Below, piece after piece: positions 5,911 through 34,543 of a stretch of DNA of 64,000 nt (its first letter is position 1; the number at the start of each line of letters is the position of its first letter). The notes under the pieces were generated by a model, which saw only the letters and a list, made by a program, of their open reading frames with translations, had not been told where the DNA came from and ran no database searches. A program made the translations under genes and the position numbers. Location of the stretch: the sequence record OQ603353.1. One strand, 5' to 3'.

Positions 5911-6366
5911 ATGCTGGAGACGGCGAGTGACAAGAAAAAGAAGGAAGAGCAAAAGCTGCATAAGGACGTGACGGAAATCATTAAGCACGAACGCCTTGGT
6001 GCTCAGAAGGGCCGAGAGGTTGAATTGCTTCAAGCGCATCAAAATAGATTGAGACACGCAGGGCGCTCCATGCAGGCCGAGAGCCTGAGCCCTCACATTC
6101 GCATCAATTCAGTTGAATCCCAAGATCATAGAGAAGCAGCACAGAAGCTCACTCATCGACTCAAGGAAAAGGTGGCCTTCCTCAAAGAAAGTGGCCGCGC
6201 CGACAAGGGCAAGGAGTTGCACACGCAGCTTGCCGAACAATACAAACACTTGCACTATTGGGCCAACGCAGGCCACACCCGCAACAAAAGTCCGACCCTG
6301 CTGCGAGCACGCGACGATTTCTACAATCGTCACATGGAGCATCAGCGGCTTGCGCTGAAACAATAA
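5911..6366 (+). CDS. Small His/Lys-rich protein, putative internal head protein
   Basis: ATG 5911 after GAGGAC RBS (track start 5821 overlaps the terminator); begins MLETASDKKKK. Confidence 0.65.
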   Translation: MLETASDKKKKEEQKLHKDVTEIIKHERLGAQKGREVELLQAHQNRLRHAGRSMQAESLSPHIRINSVESQDHREAAQKLTHRLKEKVAFLKESGRADKGKELHTQLAEQYKHLHYWANAGHTRNKSPTLLRARDDFYNRHMEHQRLALKQ

Positions 6367-6378
6367 CTGGAGGCATTC

Positions 6379-8001
6379 ATGCAATACAACAAGGCACGCG
6401 ACCTTCTGTTGGTCGCCATGACTCATCCGGACACTGGGGAGGCACTCGCAGCCCTCCTTAGTGCCCGTTCGGCTCAAGGCTTTGAGTCACTGCATCATGA
6501 ACTAGAAGCTACTAGCGCGGCAGAATACGCAGCGCTGGAAAGTGAGTTCGATACGGTGTACGCAGGCCGTACCGACAACGCCGATGGTACTGACGGCAAC
6601 TACCCACACATGCCGGGCAAGTACGATCACAGTTCTAACGGCCGCGCAAACCCTGACGACATTCTGAAGGGCAACGGCCTCGACCAGTACCCAGGTACAA
6701 AGGTAACCTTCCTTATGGACGGCAAGATTGGCAACTCGGGTGATAGCCCGAACGACCCTGCGCTCTCTAACATGCAGGACGCAGAAACTGTTCGACAGTC
6801 CAATCCCGAAGACGTTGAGCTTGACGACATTATTGGTGACGGTGATCCTATCGTTTCCACTGCGCCGGGTGAGTTCAACTACGCGCTGGATGGTGAACAC
6901 AACAACAACTTTGACGTGAGTGATTTCACTCGCGCCAACAATGATCCGAACGATCAAGACACCGTGCACGGCATCGACGACGTTCTGGATGATGAAAGTA
7001 ACGAAGTTGATCCGCAGCTGCAAGACATTCCGTTTGATGACGATGGTGAAAACGTAGATACGGAATCAGAGCAGAATTCTTCAGCCGACGATGACGGCGA
7101 TGCATCGGATGATCCCACCATGGAAAAGCAAAAGAAGCCCTCCTGGACTGACCTTGAAGGTCGGGACGACGATGAAATGGTGAACCCCCAGCTGGCGGAC
7201 GTGGACGATTCGTGCTTGGTTGTCAAGCATCCTGATTCGGTCATCAAGCGCCTTGGCAATCACCTCAAGTATCGCCATGATTCGGAAGACAATGGTGCTG
7301 GCTATGGCACCAGCTACGAACATTCGTCCGCCGATGATGATGACGTATACGATGAAGATGACGACATTCTCGATACCGACAACGAGGATTTCACCATCTT
7401 TGATGACGATCCGCTGTATGATCCGAACGATGATGACGAGGATGAAGAGAACGAGCAGGACGACGATGACGAAGATCATAACGATGGGGACTATGTTCCG
7501 GCATCGGTTGATCTTCCCAATGCCAGTCAGTACCCTGTGCAGTCCGCTGAGGATATGCCGGTAAAGATTTGGGATCGTGGCGAGCAGGTGTCGGACGTGG
7601 AGAACGACGGCGACGATGATGTACGCTTGAATCAAGTGCAGTTGGCTGATACCGATACCAACGGTGAGGCGGACGAGCTTGACATTTACCCGCCAGACGT
7701 TAATTGCACCATCACCATCGAAGGGCTGGTTCCGGGCGAGTATTGGTACAAGCATCGGGCTGTAGAAGATGCTGCCTACCACTTGCAGGAGCAGGATCGT
7801 TTCGAGAAGGCTGCATCGGCATTCACCACCCTGCACATGGATGCGAAGCGCACTGGCAACACTGAAGACGCCCGTAACTTCCACAAGCAGTTCGAGCACG
7901 CGAAGCGCTGGGCGGGTCTGCACGGCACTCGCGCTCAGGAACTTCTGAGGCTGCCTGCTGTACGACGCAAGCCGCTGCCGGAACCCCACGGCCTGTCGTA
8001 A
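6379..8001 (+). CDS. Very acidic (Asp-rich) protein, putative internal head/ejection protein
   Basis: 540 aa, GGAGG RBS, long D/E tracts, basic His-rich helical C-terminus. Confidence 0.65.
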   Translation: MQYNKARDLLLVAMTHPDTGEALAALLSARSAQGFESLHHELEATSAAEYAALESEFDTVYAGRTDNADGTDGNYPHMPGKYDHSSNGRANPDDILKGNGLDQYPGTKVTFLMDGKIGNSGDSPNDPALSNMQDAETVRQSNPEDVELDDIIGDGDPIVSTAPGEFNYALDGEHNNNFDVSDFTRANNDPNDQDTVHGIDDVLDDESNEVDPQLQDIPFDDDGENVDTESEQNSSADDDGDASDDPTMEKQKKPSWTDLEGRDDDEMVNPQLADVDDSCLVVKHPDSVIKRLGNHLKYRHDSEDNGAGYGTSYEHSSADDDDVYDEDDDILDTDNEDFTIFDDDPLYDPNDDDEDEENEQDDDDEDHNDGDYVPASVDLPNASQYPVQSAEDMPVKIWDRGEQVSDVENDGDDDVRLNQVQLADTDTNGEADELDIYPPDVNCTITIEGLVPGEYWYKHRAVEDAAYHLQEQDRFEKAASAFTTLHMDAKRTGNTEDARNFHKQFEHAKRWAGLHGTRAQELLRLPAVRRKPLPEPHGLS

Positions 8002-19228: not shown

Positions 19229-20356
19229 ATGCTCAAGTATGACAACGGGCTGGAATTGGACGTTACCATTGGTGGCGTCCAGCTTCCTGACAATGAGTTC
19301 TCGTTTCACCACCTGTCCCTAGTCAGTGACACTCGGTATTTCTTGCCGATGATGTTCATGCAGTTCGCTGACCAAGGCGACATTCTTCGGAAGGCTGGCG
19401 TTACCCTGTTTGACGCCGTACCCATTGTCATTAGCTTGGGCACTGGCGATCAGAAAAGGAACTACGAGTTCCGCCTCCACCGTCCTGAGCAAGTCACCAG
19501 CGGCAACCTGACCATCTACAAAATGAGCGGGTATCTAGATGCCCCCAAGTACCTAGCTGAGTCTCAGAACATTGGCTACACGGGTACTAGCTCTGAAATC
19601 ATCAGTCAAATCGGTGAACGTAGCGGCCTCACGCCACAGGTTGAGGATACCACCGACAACCAACGATGGTGGCAGGCCAACCGCCGCAATGCTGAGTTCG
19701 TTCGCTACATGGCCCAGCATGGATACAAGTCAGATGATTCCCTCATGTGTACGGGTGTGCGCTTCGACCGCTCCTTGCGATACATGGATCTAAACGCCAT
19801 CGAGCCGCGAGATATGTGGCTGAGTTACACAAAGATGGACCAAAACGTCGTTACAATCGTTGACCACCGATTTAACGATCCTATGGGTGGGAATAATTTG
19901 ATTAGGGGATACAGGAGTCGCACGGTAGATCAGAAGGTGAACACTCCCGACACTAACTACAACGACACCACCATCAATCCCCGTGCTTCTACCGTGAGTA
20001 TGAACCTGGACCTACAGTCTCAGATTCAGCGTGGCAAGGTCGAGTTCTCACCGCTGTACGCTCCGGGTCAGGTGCACGATAACTGGGCCAAGGCCCGCCA
20101 CCAAAACCTGCGCGGTCGCTACCTCAACAACTCGATCTGCGTTGCGCTGACCACTAACCAATCTAATCTGGACCTGTTTGATAGCGTCAAGATCGACAGT
20201 AGCTTGTCGATCCGAGACAACACTATCGGTGACGGCCAGAACAACAGCCGGGAAGGTCAGTACATCGTGGCAGGCAAGGAAATCATGCTTGTCGGTCGCA
20301 ACTACGGCGAGAAGATCAAACTGATGCGCGGCGGTATGAACGGAGAGAGTCAATGA
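19229..20356 (+). CDS. Baseplate hub protein (gp27/Mu gp44-like)
   Basis: 375 aa between the gp53-like and spike genes; TSSEIISQI, C-terminal GQYIVAGKEI hub pattern. Confidence 0.72.
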   Translation: MLKYDNGLELDVTIGGVQLPDNEFSFHHLSLVSDTRYFLPMMFMQFADQGDILRKAGVTLFDAVPIVISLGTGDQKRNYEFRLHRPEQVTSGNLTIYKMSGYLDAPKYLAESQNIGYTGTSSEIISQIGERSGLTPQVEDTTDNQRWWQANRRNAEFVRYMAQHGYKSDDSLMCTGVRFDRSLRYMDLNAIEPRDMWLSYTKMDQNVVTIVDHRFNDPMGGNNLIRGYRSRTVDQKVNTPDTNYNDTTINPRASTVSMNLDLQSQIQRGKVEFSPLYAPGQVHDNWAKARHQNLRGRYLNNSICVALTTNQSNLDLFDSVKIDSSLSIRDNTIGDGQNNSREGQYIVAGKEIMLVGRNYGEKIKLMRGGMNGESQ

Positions 20357-21090
20357 GTATCGGTATGGGCGTCCGTGAATCGGACAGCTACAAGGGCATT
20401 ATTTTCTATGGCAAGGTAGTGGACAACAATGACCCCGAACAGCTACGGCGTGTACGTGTCCATATCCCCGAGGTCTACGGTGATACCCCTCCCGAGGAAT
20501 TGCCGTGGGCCTTCCCCAAATGTCCTCCTAGCGGCACTGGCCAAAGTAGCACCTTCGGTAGCTACGGTGTGTTGGACGTAGACAGCGAAGTATGGGTGGA
20601 GTTCCAGCAAGGCGATCCCCACTTCCCTATGGTGATTGGCGTAGCCTTGCGCGCCGACCTTCGGAAGCAGACTGAGCTAGTCAACTATCCCCACCGCTAC
20701 GGCCTTGACGATTCCAAGGGTAACTGGATCATCGTTGACAAGCTGACAGGCGACGTGGAGATTGGCCACTTCTCTGATACCCGTGTTCGCATCGAGCCTA
20801 ACGGCAACCTGCACATCACTTCGGTAGCCAATCAAACGATCACGGTTGAACAGAATCAAGAGACCGAAATCAAGGGCAACGCTACAGTGCAGGTGAAAGG
20901 TAACGTCAACGTCACCGTGAACGGCAATGCGGAAATGAAGGTCGATGGGGCTATGAAGGCTAACATCGGTCAGAACCTCCAAGCTACTGTGGGTGGTAGT
21001 GCCACTGCCCAGGTTACTGGTCCTGCAACTATCAATTCAGCAGTCAAGATTTCGCTCAACGCACCAACGGTAAGTATCAACGGAGCATAA
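20353..21090 (+). CDS. Baseplate central spike (gp5/gpV-like OB-fold plus beta-helix)
   Basis: GKVVDNNDPEQLRRVRVHIP, VWVEFQQGDPHFP, then 8-residue V.GN repeats. Confidence 0.9.
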   Translation: MSIGMGVRESDSYKGIIFYGKVVDNNDPEQLRRVRVHIPEVYGDTPPEELPWAFPKCPPSGTGQSSTFGSYGVLDVDSEVWVEFQQGDPHFPMVIGVALRADLRKQTELVNYPHRYGLDDSKGNWIIVDKLTGDVEIGHFSDTRVRIEPNGNLHITSVANQTITVEQNQETEIKGNATVQVKGNVNVTVNGNAEMKVDGAMKANIGQNLQATVGGSATAQVTGPATINSAVKISLNAPTVSINGA

Positions 21091-21091
21091 G

Positions 21092-22024
21092 ATGGGAACG
21101 ATCACCATTTCAGTGACAGAGCCTTTGCCTACGTTCGACAGTCTGTATCAGGCAATGCTCCCGAATCTGACGTTCCCGCCAACCGGGTTCCAGTGGCCTC
21201 CCGCCCTCCCCGGCATCCCTACCATGTTCCCTTCTATCAGCTGCCCTAACATGAGTGGCGTCATGGCAATGGGCCAGCTGATGACCGAACAGCTGCTTAC
21301 GTCTGCGTTCATGATGATTAAGCCTATCTCGGAATTCCTAGGCTTGGCAATGTCTGCCATTCCCAAGATTCCCATCCTGAACATTGGCGTAGACCAGCTG
21401 CTAACTATGTCGGGTGACGATTTGATCGCGGCAGTAAAAGGCGCAATGCCTTCGCTACCCAATCTCTATTTCTCTCTCGACATACCGGACATCAACATCG
21501 TGCAGTGGCTGACGCAGCTGAAGTCTAGCTATCTAATGTCGCTAGCTGGATACTTGCAAAACATCATCAAGCAGGTGACAGACAAGATCAAAATTCCGGG
21601 CATGCCCACGTTGCCTACCATCCCCACGATGGAGGACGTGAAGCAAATGCTGATAGATCAGATTCCTCCTCCGATCAATGACCTTCGCAACGTTGACCTC
21701 AACGCGCTGTTGGCCAACATCAGCATCCCAGGCATCCCCTTCGATTTCTCGTTGCCATCGCCTTTTATCCCCAACATTTCGATGCCTGAGATTGATTTCA
21801 ACGAAATGATTTCGGGGCTGTACAATAGCATCGTCATGATGCCGATGAAGACAATGCAGGACTTCATCATGGACAAACTAAGTAGTGTGATTTCCCTCCA
21901 GCTGCCTACGCTGGTTTTGGTCATTCCCACTATTGAAATCCCCATTCCGGAAATCCCCATCCCTGTTATCCCGCCACTGCCTAGCATCCCGGACCTGCCT
22001 CCGCTCACCATTCGAGGCCCTTGA
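21092..22024 (+). CDS. Pro/Ile/Met-rich protein with three internal repeats, putative spike-tip protein
   Basis: 310 aa; directly after the spike where PAAR genes usually sit; repeats LP.P..P.IS.P.I plus amphipathic helix. Confidence 0.55.
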   Translation: MGTITISVTEPLPTFDSLYQAMLPNLTFPPTGFQWPPALPGIPTMFPSISCPNMSGVMAMGQLMTEQLLTSAFMMIKPISEFLGLAMSAIPKIPILNIGVDQLLTMSGDDLIAAVKGAMPSLPNLYFSLDIPDINIVQWLTQLKSSYLMSLAGYLQNIIKQVTDKIKIPGMPTLPTIPTMEDVKQMLIDQIPPPINDLRNVDLNALLANISIPGIPFDFSLPSPFIPNISMPEIDFNEMISGLYNSIVMMPMKTMQDFIMDKLSSVISLQLPTLVLVIPTIEIPIPEIPIPVIPPLPSIPDLPPLTIRGP

Positions 22025-22025
22025 A

Positions 22026-22967
22026 ATGCCTGTATCTAATCCACCTACCTTGTTGAGTGTCATTGCAGAGTTCGGAGGCCCTAACAATCTTGGGGCCTAT
22101 TACCGCAAAGGTCCATACGTACCTGACGGTCCTCCGCAGAATGCCAACATCAGTGATACGCCGGGCGGTCTTCGTCTCAGTCAGTTTGCGGGTGCGGTCA
22201 AGTACAATCTCAGTGCGTCCCTGAATCGCACGACCGCCAACACCAGTGGTAGTGGCAACAGCCAGTCGGGACGTGTCCTAACTCCACAGCTGATTGTTTA
22301 CCCCGTTAACGGCAGCGGCAACTACAGCTACTACTGGAACTACACCGCAGGCGTCCCTGTTAGCGGAAATACCAGTAGTACGTTCCAGCTGTACGCTGAT
22401 CTCAACAATGGTCAGAACATTTCTGGCAACGGTAACTGCGTGGTTACCGATAACGTCACTGGTCAGAATGCGATCCCTAGCTTTACGTTCTACCTAAGCT
22501 GGACGTATGAACGCCCACCCACCTGTGTTGTCATGGAAGCATACCTGCACGATGGAAAGCAGGCAGGCATGTACAACTCCAACGATCCTCTGCTGTTGGT
22601 CGATCCATACGCAAGGACTTCGGAGACGCTGAACATCGTAGATGCGCAGACCTTCACCCGAGAGTGTGTGACCTTGGTTACTGCCAATGGCTCACGCCTA
22701 ACGTGCTCCACCACTGCACCTATTCCAGTCAAAGCCGACTCGGAAACGCTGGTTCGTGCGGTGGATGCTCTAGGCCACCACGTTGCTACTACCACACGCC
22801 CTAACGACGTGATCCCATCGGTCACTTGGGATAAGGTAGTGCGTGTGCTGCCTGCTGGTGAGCGTGCTGTCCGCAATATCTACATCTACGACAAGTGCTT
22901 CTGGGCTTCGGATGACAATCGTTCGTTCATCCTCCATCACAACACGACTGGTAAGCAGATCATATGA
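22026..22967 (+). CDS. Fibre-tip adhesin A with C-terminal Hint (intein-like) domain
   Basis: ATG 22026; N-terminal SNPPTL.SV..EFGG docking domain; Hint from Cys 22524 (CVVMEAYL) to HHN 22943, followed by TTGKQII. Confidence 0.75.
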   Translation: MPVSNPPTLLSVIAEFGGPNNLGAYYRKGPYVPDGPPQNANISDTPGGLRLSQFAGAVKYNLSASLNRTTANTSGSGNSQSGRVLTPQLIVYPVNGSGNYSYYWNYTAGVPVSGNTSSTFQLYADLNNGQNISGNGNCVVTDNVTGQNAIPSFTFYLSWTYERPPTCVVMEAYLHDGKQAGMYNSNDPLLLVDPYARTSETLNIVDAQTFTRECVTLVTANGSRLTCSTTAPIPVKADSETLVRAVDALGHHVATTTRPNDVIPSVTWDKVVRVLPAGERAVRNIYIYDKCFWASDDNRSFILHHNTTGKQII

Positions 22968-23569
22968 TCGTCAACAAAGAACCACGCACCGCTACTCCGA
23001 TGAATTGGTTGCCTACGTACTACCTCAGTCGGATGTTTAACGCAGAAGAGTGCGCCACCATCATCAAGGAGTCAGAGGACTCCGGACTGTTTGTGCAAGG
23101 CCGCACCATTGGCGACAATAACGTGACTGTAACAGAGCAAGGCCGTCAGGTGGCCATTATCCGACTGGCTGGAGGTACGCTGTACGAAATGATGCGCCAA
23201 CGGATACTGGAACGGCTGCCTGACCTAAACTCCTGCTATCAGTTTGAACTGTTCGGCGCAGATGAAGTCTTCAAGGAAATCCATATCCTGAAGTACGTGG
23301 AAGGTAATTTCCACGGTGAACATTTGGACCTCGCCGGTTACGAGGAAATGTGCAACCGGAAGCTCAGCCTCATCGTCCAGTTGAATCCGGATTACGAGGG
23401 CGGTGAATTAGTCCTCTACAACTCTTATCCCGAGAAACCTCTGACCAATAGCAAGCAGGCTGGCGACGCAGTGGTGTTCCCTGCATGGATGCCGCACGAA
23501 GTAAGACCTGTTGACTACGGGACTAGATACGTTCTTGTGGTTTGGTTGCGAGGCCCTAAATTTAGATAG
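22964..23569 (+). CDS. 2OG-Fe(II) oxygenase (prolyl-hydroxylase-like), catalytic motifs intact
   Basis: HLD (HxD), RKLSLIVQL, YEGGEL, VFPAWMPHEV (distal His), GTRYVLV.W (2OG-binding Arg). Confidence 0.9.
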   Translation: MIVNKEPRTATPMNWLPTYYLSRMFNAEECATIIKESEDSGLFVQGRTIGDNNVTVTEQGRQVAIIRLAGGTLYEMMRQRILERLPDLNSCYQFELFGADEVFKEIHILKYVEGNFHGEHLDLAGYEEMCNRKLSLIVQLNPDYEGGELVLYNSYPEKPLTNSKQAGDAVVFPAWMPHEVRPVDYGTRYVLVVWLRGPKFR

Positions 23570-23579
23570 GGAGGTACTC

Positions 23580-24167
23580 ATGGCCGTATCAAACCCACCA
23601 ACATTGGTGAGCGTGCGTAACGAATTCGGTGGCAACGGAAATCTCCGTGCCTACACACGAGGCGGTGGCCTTGTTCCAGATGGGCCTGCGCAGAATGCGA
23701 ACATCAGCAAAACTCCGGACGGTTTGCGGCTTAGTCAATTTGCAGGAGCAACTAAAATCACTGCACAGTTGACCGACATTTATGCGCAGCAGTCCTACTA
23801 CGGACAATCGGGTCAAGACAACACTGCTTCTGCCACCATCCAGTTTAGTACCGATGGCAACATCTACTACACATGGGGTATGGGAGCTTTGCAGACGTAC
23901 CGATGGTTGGCTGGCGGTAATGCAAGTGATTTTGACGTAGAAGGATTTAATCAGCAGATCGCAGGTAACGGTCAAACCTCGGGCACGATGAATCGTCAGA
24001 ATTTGGGTGGTTCTCCCCGATGGTCATGTTCCGCTGCAACCCGATTTGGTTTTGTTGATTCTTCCATGTCATTTGGCTGCCGAATCTACCAAGCGGGTAC
24101 TGGTAACGTTATCGCTACAGCGAATTTCAGTATTTATGCCGCCGCCTCAGATGGTAGCATCGGATAG
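23580..24167 (+). CDS. Fibre-tip adhesin B (no Hint domain)
   Basis: ATG 23580 with GGGAGG RBS; first ~57 aa closely match the N-terminus of 22026. Confidence 0.75.
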   Translation: MAVSNPPTLVSVRNEFGGNGNLRAYTRGGGLVPDGPAQNANISKTPDGLRLSQFAGATKITAQLTDIYAQQSYYGQSGQDNTASATIQFSTDGNIYYTWGMGALQTYRWLAGGNASDFDVEGFNQQIAGNGQTSGTMNRQNLGGSPRWSCSAATRFGFVDSSMSFGCRIYQAGTGNVIATANFSIYAAASDGSIG

Positions 24168-32732: not shown

Positions 32733-34124
32733 ATGTGGATCACCCCTCAGAATCAAACTCTTGATGACACGTTCGATCCCTACTTTCCGGGTACAACTCG
32801 GTGGTATGGTTATACCGGCATCCTCATCAACAACACGCAAGACACCTACGATCGGTACGCTCCTTTGCAGTATGGCAGGCAAGCTCCATCCACGGCGATC
32901 CTTGCGCAGAATCAGGTAGACCTGAATCAGATTTACGCAGCCCGAGGTACAGCAGGCTACCTGCAAGGTATCTCTATCCCCAATTGCTACGTAGGTTGCT
33001 CGGGCGTTACCATCAACGATCTTCTCGCTGCGCGATGCACCATCATCATCAAGAACGACGGTACGTGGCAGCAGTGGTTCTATTCCACCAACTACAAGAC
33101 GGATAGCCCGGGTGCGTATGCACCTCCCAATCGCGGCATTCCTCGAACCGAAACCAACTTCAGCAACGGACGCATGAACGCCGCTGGTAACTGGGCACAG
33201 ATTCCGTTCGCTGGTGTAGGTAACAACTACGAGACTTTCTGCCACGCTCCTTGGGCCCCCTACGAAAGCAAGAACCCACCCGATCTGGATTGGGGTACTG
33301 CCGATCACTATAATCGGTACGATGGCGCACTCATCAACTATATCTGGCACAACTTTAAGGGCCAAGGACAGTTCGGTAGCGCTAGTGATCCCTACGTGGT
33401 GCAGAACACTACACAGAACCCTAATGAAGACATTCCAGATGGTCGGGTATATCGCATCGACCGCGATATTCGGTTCACCCTTGGCTTGACTGCACAGGGA
33501 CGCAACAACGTTCGTTGGAACTACGATGACAACGGTGCTCTGTCATGGTACAACCGAGCCAACTTTTCGGTGTACATTCAGACACCCGGCGGCGGTCAGC
33601 GTGTAGGTGCCACGTGCTTGATGACCAATGAGATTCGATGGAACGCGTGGAATTGGACGGGTGGTAGCGTTGGTGGAGGTGGCGGCGGAGGTGGCGGCGG
33701 TTGCGTTGCTGCTACCAGCTATGTTGACTTCCAAAAGACCGCAGGCACGGTTGAGGCGGGCGACTATCTGATGGGCATGACTGATGATCTGCAATTCATG
33801 GAGCTACATGTCCTGAGCGTGCGTCGTCAAGTACAGCCATGTGTCCGACTCTACTCCAAGAGTGGTGTCACCCTTGTGTGCTCAAAGTCTACGCCGCTGA
33901 CCCTACAGAACGGAGACTGTGTGCTGGCAGGCGAGGCACGTGCAGGCATTAAGCTTCCGGTACGATTCTTCGCTGCTGATCCTGAGTGGGAAACCATCAT
34001 CAAGATCGAGGAGGTTGGCAACCGAGAAGTGATGCTCATCAACTGCGGTGGACAGAGCTATGCTGCCGGTGAGTTGCCGGGCCGTTATATCTACACCCAC
34101 AACAACAACCAGCAGAAGATGTGA
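32733..34124 (+). CDS. Fibre-tip adhesin C with Gly10 linker and C-terminal Hint domain
   Basis: 463 aa; aromatic/Asn-rich body; G10 then Cys 33702 (CVAATSYV), LVCSKSTPL, WETIIKIEEVG.REV, IYTHN 34103. Confidence 0.78.
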   Translation: MWITPQNQTLDDTFDPYFPGTTRWYGYTGILINNTQDTYDRYAPLQYGRQAPSTAILAQNQVDLNQIYAARGTAGYLQGISIPNCYVGCSGVTINDLLAARCTIIIKNDGTWQQWFYSTNYKTDSPGAYAPPNRGIPRTETNFSNGRMNAAGNWAQIPFAGVGNNYETFCHAPWAPYESKNPPDLDWGTADHYNRYDGALINYIWHNFKGQGQFGSASDPYVVQNTTQNPNEDIPDGRVYRIDRDIRFTLGLTAQGRNNVRWNYDDNGALSWYNRANFSVYIQTPGGGQRVGATCLMTNEIRWNAWNWTGGSVGGGGGGGGGGCVAATSYVDFQKTAGTVEAGDYLMGMTDDLQFMELHVLSVRRQVQPCVRLYSKSGVTLVCSKSTPLTLQNGDCVLAGEARAGIKLPVRFFAADPEWETIIKIEEVGNREVMLINCGGQSYAAGELPGRYIYTHNNNQQKM

Positions 34125-34543
34125 TGATTGGTTCTGACCAACTCTCAGAAGTAGGTGTACCTGTCGGAGAGCTCTCCATTGGGAGGACTCTAGACGTATA
34201 TGCGGTGGACGATCTACACTCGGTCATCCGCCTGAAAGGAACCGTCTCAAATCGGGTCCTCCGTAGTGCAGAAGTAGTCACCATCACAACTGCCTCCGGC
34301 GCTTCCGTTGTGGTGGCTGCCCAAAGTCGCCTCCCTGTCTATAGCGGACAGACGGCGCTGGCTAAGAATGTTGGTGCCAACATGATTGCTGTGATGGCCC
34401 CTAATGGCGCTTTTCGGTGGGAGCGGGTTGACACCATCGAGGCTGGTACTGAGGCCGTAGTGGACCTCAAGTGTGAAGGCTACATAGTAGCCGGTAACGA
34501 TCCTAAAACCGGGCTAATCTTGGTGTCTGGATCGCTGTCGTGA
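34121..34543 (+). CDS. Stand-alone Hint-fold-like protein lacking catalytic residues
   Basis: 140 aa; ITTASGASVVV, FRWERVDTIEAG..VVDL..YIVAG align with Hint strands; no Cys1 and no terminal HN. Confidence 0.6.
   Translation: MMIGSDQLSEVGVPVGELSIGRTLDVYAVDDLHSVIRLKGTVSNRVLRSAEVVTITTASGASVVVAAQSRLPVYSGQTALAKNVGANMIAVMAPNGAFRWERVDTIEAGTEAVVDLKCEGYIVAGNDPKTGLILVSGSLS

Follow-up and report, generated by a model that had tools for sequence, protein, structure and literature searches.

Does a Hint (Hedgehog/intein) domain that stops seven residues short of the C-terminus of a phage tail protein splice itself out, as an intein would, or does it remove itself together with the short tail behind it? 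The question is raised by a 313-residue protein encoded in a stretch of 64,000 nucleotides from sequence record OQ603353.1, which was analysed at its full length and is referred to here as the window. The first-pass annotation of this DNA, made from the sequence alone, had described a mini-intein-like domain at the end of the protein and proposed that it could splice to leave a C-terminal heptapeptide attached or only cleave. What the analysis shows directly is the predicted fold of this domain, its conserved residues, where it sits in the protein, the family to which it belongs, and Hint-less homologues of the part that precedes it. The domain is probably a self-removing module of bacterial intein-like (BIL) type, from an intein-derived family that caps phage tail and baseplate proteins at their C-terminal ends. 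Judged from sequence comparison, the selected function of the family would be self-removal by cleavage and not the ligation of exteins, and the window domain is most likely not a true intein.

A Hint fold close to the C-terminus

The translation of positions 22524-22967 (+) opens with CVVMEAYL and ends with FILHHN, TTGKQII and a stop codon, in agreement with the annotated 140-residue domain that runs from Cys1 to His-His-Asn (residues 167-306 of 313) and is followed by the heptapeptide. The Cys1, the terminal His-Asn and a Thr at the first position after the Asn (+1), all of which had been pointed out, are present in the translation, and Cys1 is preceded by Pro-Pro-Thr. An AlphaFold2 (AF2) model of the whole protein, made with 45 aligned relatives, had a mean predicted local distance difference test (pLDDT) score of 90.1, with values below 50 for residues 310-313 of the tail, and a model of the Hint domain alone reached a pLDDT of 93.9 and a predicted template modelling score of 0.89. 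When the latter was compared with the PDB using Foldseek, the top 50 matches all had the Hint fold, with template modelling (TM) scores of 0.6-0.77, and the best among them were mini-inteins, BIL domains and Hedgehog domains. According to these models, the domain has the horseshoe-shaped, all-beta Hint fold that had been suspected. The comparison of folds was rejected as a means of telling intein, BIL and Hedgehog domains apart, as the TM score was about 0.7 for all of them.

Single-sequence searches with the Hint domain gave no match in Pfam (E<=0.1) or among PDB sequences (phmmer). Profiles of the family (described below) reached inteins and nothing else in the PDB, namely PhoCDC21-1 (E 6e-4) and Npu DnaB and gp41-1 (about 1e-3); the chains reached were 6rpq (6e-4 to 5e-3), 4o1r and 6qaz (both about 1e-3). 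In the HMMER alignments to intein chains, Ser228 (family Ser62) occupies the place of the block-B Thr, Ala231 (family Ala65) that of the block-B His, and family His118, which is Asn284 in the window protein, is aligned to the block-F Asp. The claim that the block-B His is replaced, and that the chemistry is therefore non-canonical, held for nearly the whole family, since Ala stands at this place here and in 120 of 126 relatives. An obligatory disulfide between the conserved Cys residues of blocks B and F was also considered and found no support, because members that lose one of them keep the other.

A large family with conserved ends and without the block-B histidine

A phmmer search of the Hint domain against 1.84 billion representative proteins, in clusters at 50% identity, retrieved 336 proteins at E<=1e-3, of which 91 reached E<=1e-10, and the alignments nearly always ran from the residue before Cys1 to the residue after the Asn. 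This number of matches, together with the conserved catalytic ends, places the domain far beyond chance. Residues were counted in 126 full-length domains, and the +1 position and tails in 151 domain ends. Cys1 was found in 124 and Val2 in 123 of the 126 domains; block B was built from Cys (116), Ser (125), Ala (120) and Pro (124), block F from Cys (97), Phe (121), Trp (110) and Ala (120), and Trp102 was kept in 115. The three terminal residues were equally constant (His 118, His 125, Asn 125). Selection on a catalytic function is suggested by this near-invariance of Cys1 and His-His-Asn at the exact boundaries of the domain. The ten residues before Cys1 were mostly Gly, with Gly at the position directly before it (-1) in 51 of 129, and a poly-Gly linker was usual.

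The family was not covered by existing models: a Pfam scan of 64 different family proteins gave no match to a Hint, PT-HINT or intein model, and an NCBIfam scan of 45 gave no intein model above noise. A pattern scan of IMG/VR yielded 44 viral loci with the domain at the end of open reading frames (ORFs) of 247-2105 aa, most of them matching residues 167-306 exactly and a few being longer or shorter by a few residues. The carriers (247-2326 aa) were mutually unrelated and included GpJ/Phage-tail_3, PKD/Ig-repeat and InlB-repeat proteins, as well as the giant 'VlrC' protein of Stenotrophomonas phage DLP_6. The Hint domain always lay near the C-terminus of its carrier, not inside a conserved host protein. 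BFVD contains proteins of uncultured phages that resemble the domain in predicted structure and bear the automatic name 'Hint domain', so that Hint folds in phage proteins other than inteins can already be seen in databases. No paper describing a Hint or BIL domain on a phage tail protein was found in our literature searches, and the one on the PhiXhv phages, which carry the window gene, uses neither the word 'intein' nor the word 'Hint'.

At eight of 53 loci (L005, L012, L013, L017, L018, L019, L039 and L051), a pair of ORFs lying close together on one strand, apparently as neighbouring genes, both ended in a Hint domain; this count leaves out a ninth flagged locus, which is a record of this phage and has non-adjacent copies. 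One phage can therefore use the module on several of its tail proteins. Tandem Hint domains 4-7 residues apart were seen in five proteins (P0003, P0008, P0036, P0053 and P0129); in P0036 and P0053, the last domain ends in His-His-Asp directly before the stop codon, with no tail. A Cys-rich subfamily on large phage contigs (L005, L007, L012 and L017, around 5990-6480; P0018 and P0040) has three Cys just before Cys1 and five or seven in a tail of 22-26 aa, odd numbers on each flank with an even sum, as if the flanks formed one disulfide-knotted unit, and such counts may be natural evidence of ligation or tethering.

A minority of the members was bacterial. One lay on a contig with ordinary cellular genes, one was named RHS repeat protein, and one had a Peptidase_M91-like N-domain, which is an effector-type metalloprotease. 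This membership rests on L050, P0077 and P0100, and bacteria are under-sampled here, the scan of genome contigs having used one narrow pattern and retrieved only one contig of a metagenome-assembled genome. In the bacterial members (L050 8001-9500, which is P0047, and P0045, P0058, P0070, P0077 and P0100), the Asn is followed by tails of about 40-100 aa that open with a Gly run and an acidic, Trp-containing stretch; there, the Hint domain may release a secreted module.

Splicing or self-removal

Inteins are recognised by intein-free homologues that are continuous across the insertion point. The window protein showed the opposite pattern, as its Hint-less homologues end at -1 and hold no counterpart of a C-extein. 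Two small proteins, LUCX_300 of LucasX (173 aa) and WJJ55134 of RTH11 (152 aa), align end to end with residues 1-166 of the window protein, sharing its N-terminal segment and the immunoglobulin-like (Ig-like) domain that follows, and stop at Thr166, which is the -1 position. The heptapeptide TTGKQII has no equivalent in them, and a search for a Hint domain within 3 kb of either gene found none. A paralogue in the window likewise has no Hint domain. Because the LucasX and RTH11 homologues end at -1, the 166-residue N-terminal part is a complete protein, and we regard them, on comparative grounds, as the most telling evidence against splicing.

The residues behind the domain were also informative. 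At +1, the 151 domain ends carried mainly Leu (45), Lys (21), Ile (21), Ala (20), Met (12) and Val (10), and Cys, Ser or Thr in only eight cases; Thr307 of the window protein is common only to its closest relative (P0151, 54% identical), in which Thr-Thr-Gly is kept. The tails were between 0 and over 100 aa long (median 9), 97 of the 151 having 15 residues or fewer, and their sequences were variable except for a Lys at +2 (113 of 151), the only conserved tail residue. The rarity of a nucleophile at +1, the short and variable tails, and the Hint-less homologues together suggest that self-removal is the selected function.

True splicing would excise the Hint domain and join Thr166 to Thr307 in a protein of 173 aa and 18.34 kDa that ends in TTGKQII. 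It could proceed through Thr307, as in a class 1 intein, or through attack of the freed amino end of the tail on the thioester, as in an A-type BIL domain. We consider this outcome unlikely, since it is at odds with the scarcity of +1 nucleophiles, the unconserved length and sequence of the tails, and the homologues that end at -1, and also with the missing block-B His and the two tandem-domain proteins that stop right after His-His-Asp. It nevertheless gains some weight from the presence of Cys1, His-Asn and the +1 Thr in one protein, from the Thr-Thr-Gly retained in P0151, from the frequent Lys at +2, and from the odd flank counts of the Cys-rich subfamily, which resemble those of one disulfide unit. 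Moreover, A-type BIL domains are able to splice without a +1 nucleophile (PMC5874633), and BIL domains turned into efficient splicers once a single change had provided one (PMC7664689). The same study reported mostly cleaved products for BIL domains lacking the +1 nucleophile and functional inteins lacking the block-B His (PMC7664689); given this published behaviour, the window protein may also yield some spliced product. The cleavage alternative put forward by the first-pass annotation is supported, and splicing as the principal outcome is not.

Predicted course of self-removal and alternative fates of the thioester

We infer a catalytic activity, an order of steps and a role in assembly for the Hint domain, as follows. 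Cys167 would attack the Thr166-Cys167 bond in an N-S acyl shift, producing a thioester, and cyclisation of Asn306 would free the tail. The thioester would be resolved mainly by water, leaving the 166-residue N-terminal part (17.6 kDa), which comprises an anchor and the Ig-like domain, as the mature virion protein, and the 15.5-kDa Hint domain and the heptapeptide would be discarded. By analogy with Peptidase_S74, the self-cleaving intramolecular chaperone of other tail fibres and spikes, the Hint domain would take part while the protein folds or is assembled and would no longer be found in the completed particle.

Several points weigh against self-removal. The first step normally has the block-B His as its key catalyst; this residue is missing, and none was identified that could replace it. 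The window protein departs from the family consensus at several moderately conserved sites, one of them being the block-F position aligned with the intein Asp, which is Asn here and His in most members. A need for N-terminal cleavage alone would hardly account for the near-invariant His-His-Asn or for the Lys at +2, and the conservation of Thr307 in the nearest relative suggests that canonical splicing is chemically possible. The suggested link between the Hint domain and fibre folding is by analogy only, and the literature searches found no experimental processing of any family member.

The thioester could have another fate if, as in Hedgehog or BUBL-like transfer, it were resolved by another molecule, such as a virion Lys, a lipid or a host-surface amine, resulting in covalent attachment of the Ig-like protein. 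The C-terminal place of the Hint domain and its usually Gly-rich -1 side recall the Gly-Cys site of Hedgehog, both Hedgehog and Tetrahymena BIL2 are good structural matches, and the tail is too short to form a domain of its own. However, no adduct-recognition region follows the Hint domain, the conserved His-His-Asn is not needed by Hedgehog domains, the window protein has Pro-Pro-Thr and not Gly before Cys1, and no acceptor candidate is known, all of which make this transfer highly improbable. A wider form of the idea, to which we also give very little credence, is that the family constitutes a phage-borne, enzyme-free conjugation device, in which capture of the C-terminal thioester by an amine would yield an isopeptide-linked or covalently anchored fibre. 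Candidates for the amine would be the conserved Lys at +2, lysines in other proteins of the virion and amines on the host surface, and the device may be used in assembly or adsorption; the only hints for it are the odd-plus-odd Cys counts of the flanks in the Cys-rich subfamily and the Lys at +2.

Further Hint copies in the window

When every ORF of the window was searched with a hidden Markov model (HMM) of the family, two more members came to light, both at the distal end of the baseplate/fibre module. The first belongs to a 463-residue protein, in which a run of nine Gly and a Cys are followed by a Hint domain of 134 aa (33702-34103), Thr-His-Asn and a 6-aa tail, NNQQKM. It is only 21% identical to the first copy, and since an Asn occupies +1, there is no nucleophile at that position. 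The second is a free-standing ORF whose start overlaps the stop of the former; it has lost the Cys at the N-terminus, has no block-B motif and does not end in His-Asn. It may represent a non-catalytic partner or a decayed tandem copy.

This degenerate ORF indicates that non-catalytic Hint folds are tolerated in the same phage, and it thereby bears on the alternative that the window domain is itself a catalytically dead Hint fold that stays at the tip of the baseplate protein in a structural or binding role. The missing block-B His and the Asn at the position of the intein block-F Asp would fit such a role. Nonetheless, we find it quite improbable: a structural domain would not need the Cys1 and His-His-Asn that are near-invariant at the boundaries across 336 clusters, the window domain is unlike the degenerate copy, which has the look of decay, and the Hint-less homologues show the N-terminal part functioning alone.

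Organization of the gene and its neighbourhood

The coordinates of the features are listed in Table 1. This region matches Xanthomonas phage Ep026 and Erwinia phage Ep032 at 100% identity and the jumbo myophages PhiXhv-12, -15 and -16 (227-229 kb) at 97.8-99.8%. These phages infect a bacterial plant pathogen and are not viruses of plants or animals. The protein is 100% identical in Ep026, Ep032, PhiXhv-15 and PhiXhv-16 and shares 312 of 313 residues with that of PhiXhv-12; in PhiXhv-16, it is labelled 'hypothetical protein' (XYR93569.1). The gene is preceded by a GAGG Shine-Dalgarno sequence 9 nt 5' of its start codon and lies within a tail/baseplate module, in which a gp5-like spike gene (Pfam Phage_base_V and Gp5_trimer_C) and a gene for a 310-aa protein stand directly upstream of it, in this order. 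The locus of the closest relative (L052) is syntenic with this setting.

Table 1. Features of the Hint-bearing gene and its surroundings in the window
Feature	Position	Strand	Description
gp5-like spike gene	20353-21090		Phage_base_V, Gp5_trimer_C
310-aa protein	21092-22024	+	between spike and Hint-bearing gene
Whole Hint-bearing gene	22026..22967	+	313 aa; precursor 33.84 kDa; ORF and translation
Conserved N-terminal segment	22026..22199	+	aa 1-58; identity among relatives
Hypervariable Ig-like beta-sandwich	22200..22523	+	aa 59-166; ends with Thr166, the -1 residue
Hint-fold domain	22524..22943	+	140 aa, Cys167 to Asn306, 15.52 kDa; AF2, Foldseek, family search
Cys1 codon (Cys167)	22524..22526	+	predicted nucleophile of the N-S acyl shift at Thr166-Cys167
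Block-B equivalent CSTTAP	22704..22721	+	HMMER alignments to intein chains 6rpq, 4o1r, 6qaz
Block-F equivalent DKCFWAS	22890..22910	+	most conserved motif of the C-terminal half; one of two patterns that retrieved the 44 viral loci
His-His-Asn domain end	22935..22943	+	Asn306 is the predicted cyclising residue; HHN in 138/151 domain ends
7-aa tail TTGKQII ('C-extein') and stop	22944..22967	+	0.76 kDa; tail 22944-22964, stop 22965-22967
2OG-Fe(II) oxygenase gene	22964-23569	+	PF13640, prolyl-hydroxylase-like
Paralogue of the Hint-bearing gene	23580-24167	+	195 aa
Second Hint protein	32733-34124	+	463 aa; HMM E 5e-34
Degenerate free-standing Hint-like ORF	34124-34543	+	139 aa; HMM E 3e-10, model positions 25-129

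The N-terminal part of the protein is composed of two segments. Residues 1-58 are 40-67% identical to the window protein in 10 of 12 relatives of about 300-340 aa, the two outliers P0010 and P0038 having 14% and 21%, and the segment is common to the downstream paralogue and to the small LucasX and RTH11 proteins; through it, the protein probably docks to the virion. Residues 59-166 form an all-beta AF2 model with a pLDDT of about 90 and gave weak Foldseek matches to pilin and chaperone Ig folds. Identity among the relatives was 15-46% in this middle domain versus 34-55% in the Hint domain. A PHROGs search returned weak Ig-like matches only and none to the Hint domain. The paralogue is 47% identical over its first 143 aa, has a different C-terminus of about 50 aa without a Hint domain, and is absent from the syntenic locus L052.

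Among the neighbouring genes, the 310-aa protein is rich in Met, Ile and Pro and has a Pro-rich C-terminus with Ile-Pro repeats; it had no family match in Pfam or PHROGs. Downstream, the stop of the Hint-bearing gene overlaps the start of a 2-oxoglutarate (2OG)-Fe(II) oxygenase gene (ATGA), an overlap also seen in the closest relative (L052 9061-9675), and another oxygenase lies near a Hint gene of a further jumbo-phage contig (L003 11425-12036). The enzyme may modify neighbouring Pro- or Gly-rich tail proteins. A general link between Hint domain and oxygenase was rejected, since among the loci compared the latter occurred only in the closest relatives and in L003. Read-through or frameshifting into the oxygenase gene, which would lengthen the C-extein, was likewise dropped, as nothing supported it; the two genes, which share no more than the ATGA overlap, are read in different frames.

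Significance

Hint domains are known as inteins, as Hedgehog processing domains and as BIL domains. The sequences compared here describe a fourth setting, a large clade without the block-B His and with motifs of its own, located at the extreme C-terminus of proteins of the phage tail, baseplate and fibres, which was undescribed in the literature searched and is not captured by Pfam or NCBIfam. If the domain is active, phage biology would have, next to the S74 chaperone, a second kind of self-removing C-terminal module with a chemistry of its own, and the prediction of mature receptor-binding proteins would change, since the last 145 residues or so would not be part of the virion. For the window phage, the virion protein would be the 166-residue anchor and Ig-like domain. 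An active family would also offer hundreds of natural cases in which the N-S acyl shift and Asn cyclisation proceed in the absence of the canonical His, and compact self-cleaving tags of about 135-145 aa for study.

Comparison with known autoprocessing systems

The class 1 mini-inteins, several of which are phage-derived, are the nearest relatives by sequence, as theirs were the sole PDB chains reached by the family profile. Ssp and Npu DnaB, the cyanophage-like gp41-1 and PhoCDC21-1 also provided the best structural matches (query-normalised TM score, TMq, 0.70-0.75 for Ssp DnaB and 0.66-0.75 for Ssp and Npu). They share with the family the Cys1, the block-B Ser/Thr, the penultimate His and the terminal Asn, and gp41-1 also has its block-B Cys-Ser pair. 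In contrast, the family has Ala for the block-B His, so that the window domain reads Ser-x-x-Ala where class 1 inteins have Thr-x-x-His, it has His or Asn at the block-F Asp position, and its +1 nucleophile is unconserved. Furthermore, its place is always close to the C-terminus of tail or surface proteins that are unrelated to one another, with a C-extein of few residues, unlike inteins, which occupy a conserved housekeeping site with continuous intein-free homologues.

The Hog/Hint domain of Hedgehog has the same fold (6tyy, TMq 0.68), a C-terminal place and a small or Gly residue before Cys1, and releases a functional N-terminal protein, as is predicted for the window Hint domain. Hedgehog domains do not need a terminal Asn, and their Hint part is followed by an adduct (sterol) recognition region. 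The family, on the other hand, keeps His-His-Asn and has no such region, only seven residues following the Hint domain of the window protein. The pre-toxin HINT of polymorphic toxins is a Hint peptidase that releases a neighbouring module of a secreted protein (PMC3482391), and the bacterial family members with an RHS region or a Peptidase_M91-like domain are reminiscent of these toxins. There, however, the Hint domain precedes a large C-terminal toxin domain, whereas the window protein has only the heptapeptide and the family gave no PT-HINT match in Pfam.

Peptidase_S74 resembles the family in its place and presumed job, being a conserved self-cleaving C-terminal module that one phage carries on many different tail proteins. 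A conserved anchor, a variable middle and this C-terminal module make up many S74-bearing receptor-binding proteins of phages, and in the related jumbo-phage contig L003, fibre genes neighbouring the Hint gene end in Peptidase_S74. The two differ in fold and chemistry, S74 using a Ser-Lys dyad in a trimer, and the window protein did not match PF13884; the likeness would be one of function only.

Finally, the A-type BIL domain of Clostridium thermocellum (2lwy) has the same Hint fold (TMq 0.71; target-normalised TM score, TMt, 0.77; root-mean-square deviation 2.9). Like the family, A-type BIL domains have a Cys1 and a His-Asn end without a conserved +1 nucleophile or an endonuclease domain, and they lie beside hypervariable regions of non-essential surface proteins, a location matched by the Hint domain of the window protein. 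These are the defining features of the class, for which mainly cleavage products are expected (PMC7664689, PMC7765530). In sequence, the window domain falls outside the class, as the family profile gave no match to the BIL chains 2lwy and 6y75 at E<=10, even though it reached inteins. Compared with A-type BIL domains, the family is set apart by its own motifs (Cys-Ser-x-Thr-Ala-Pro, Cys-Phe-Trp-Ala-Gly and a Lys at +2), by its occurrence mainly in phages, and by its position at the extreme C-terminus after a poly-Gly stretch.

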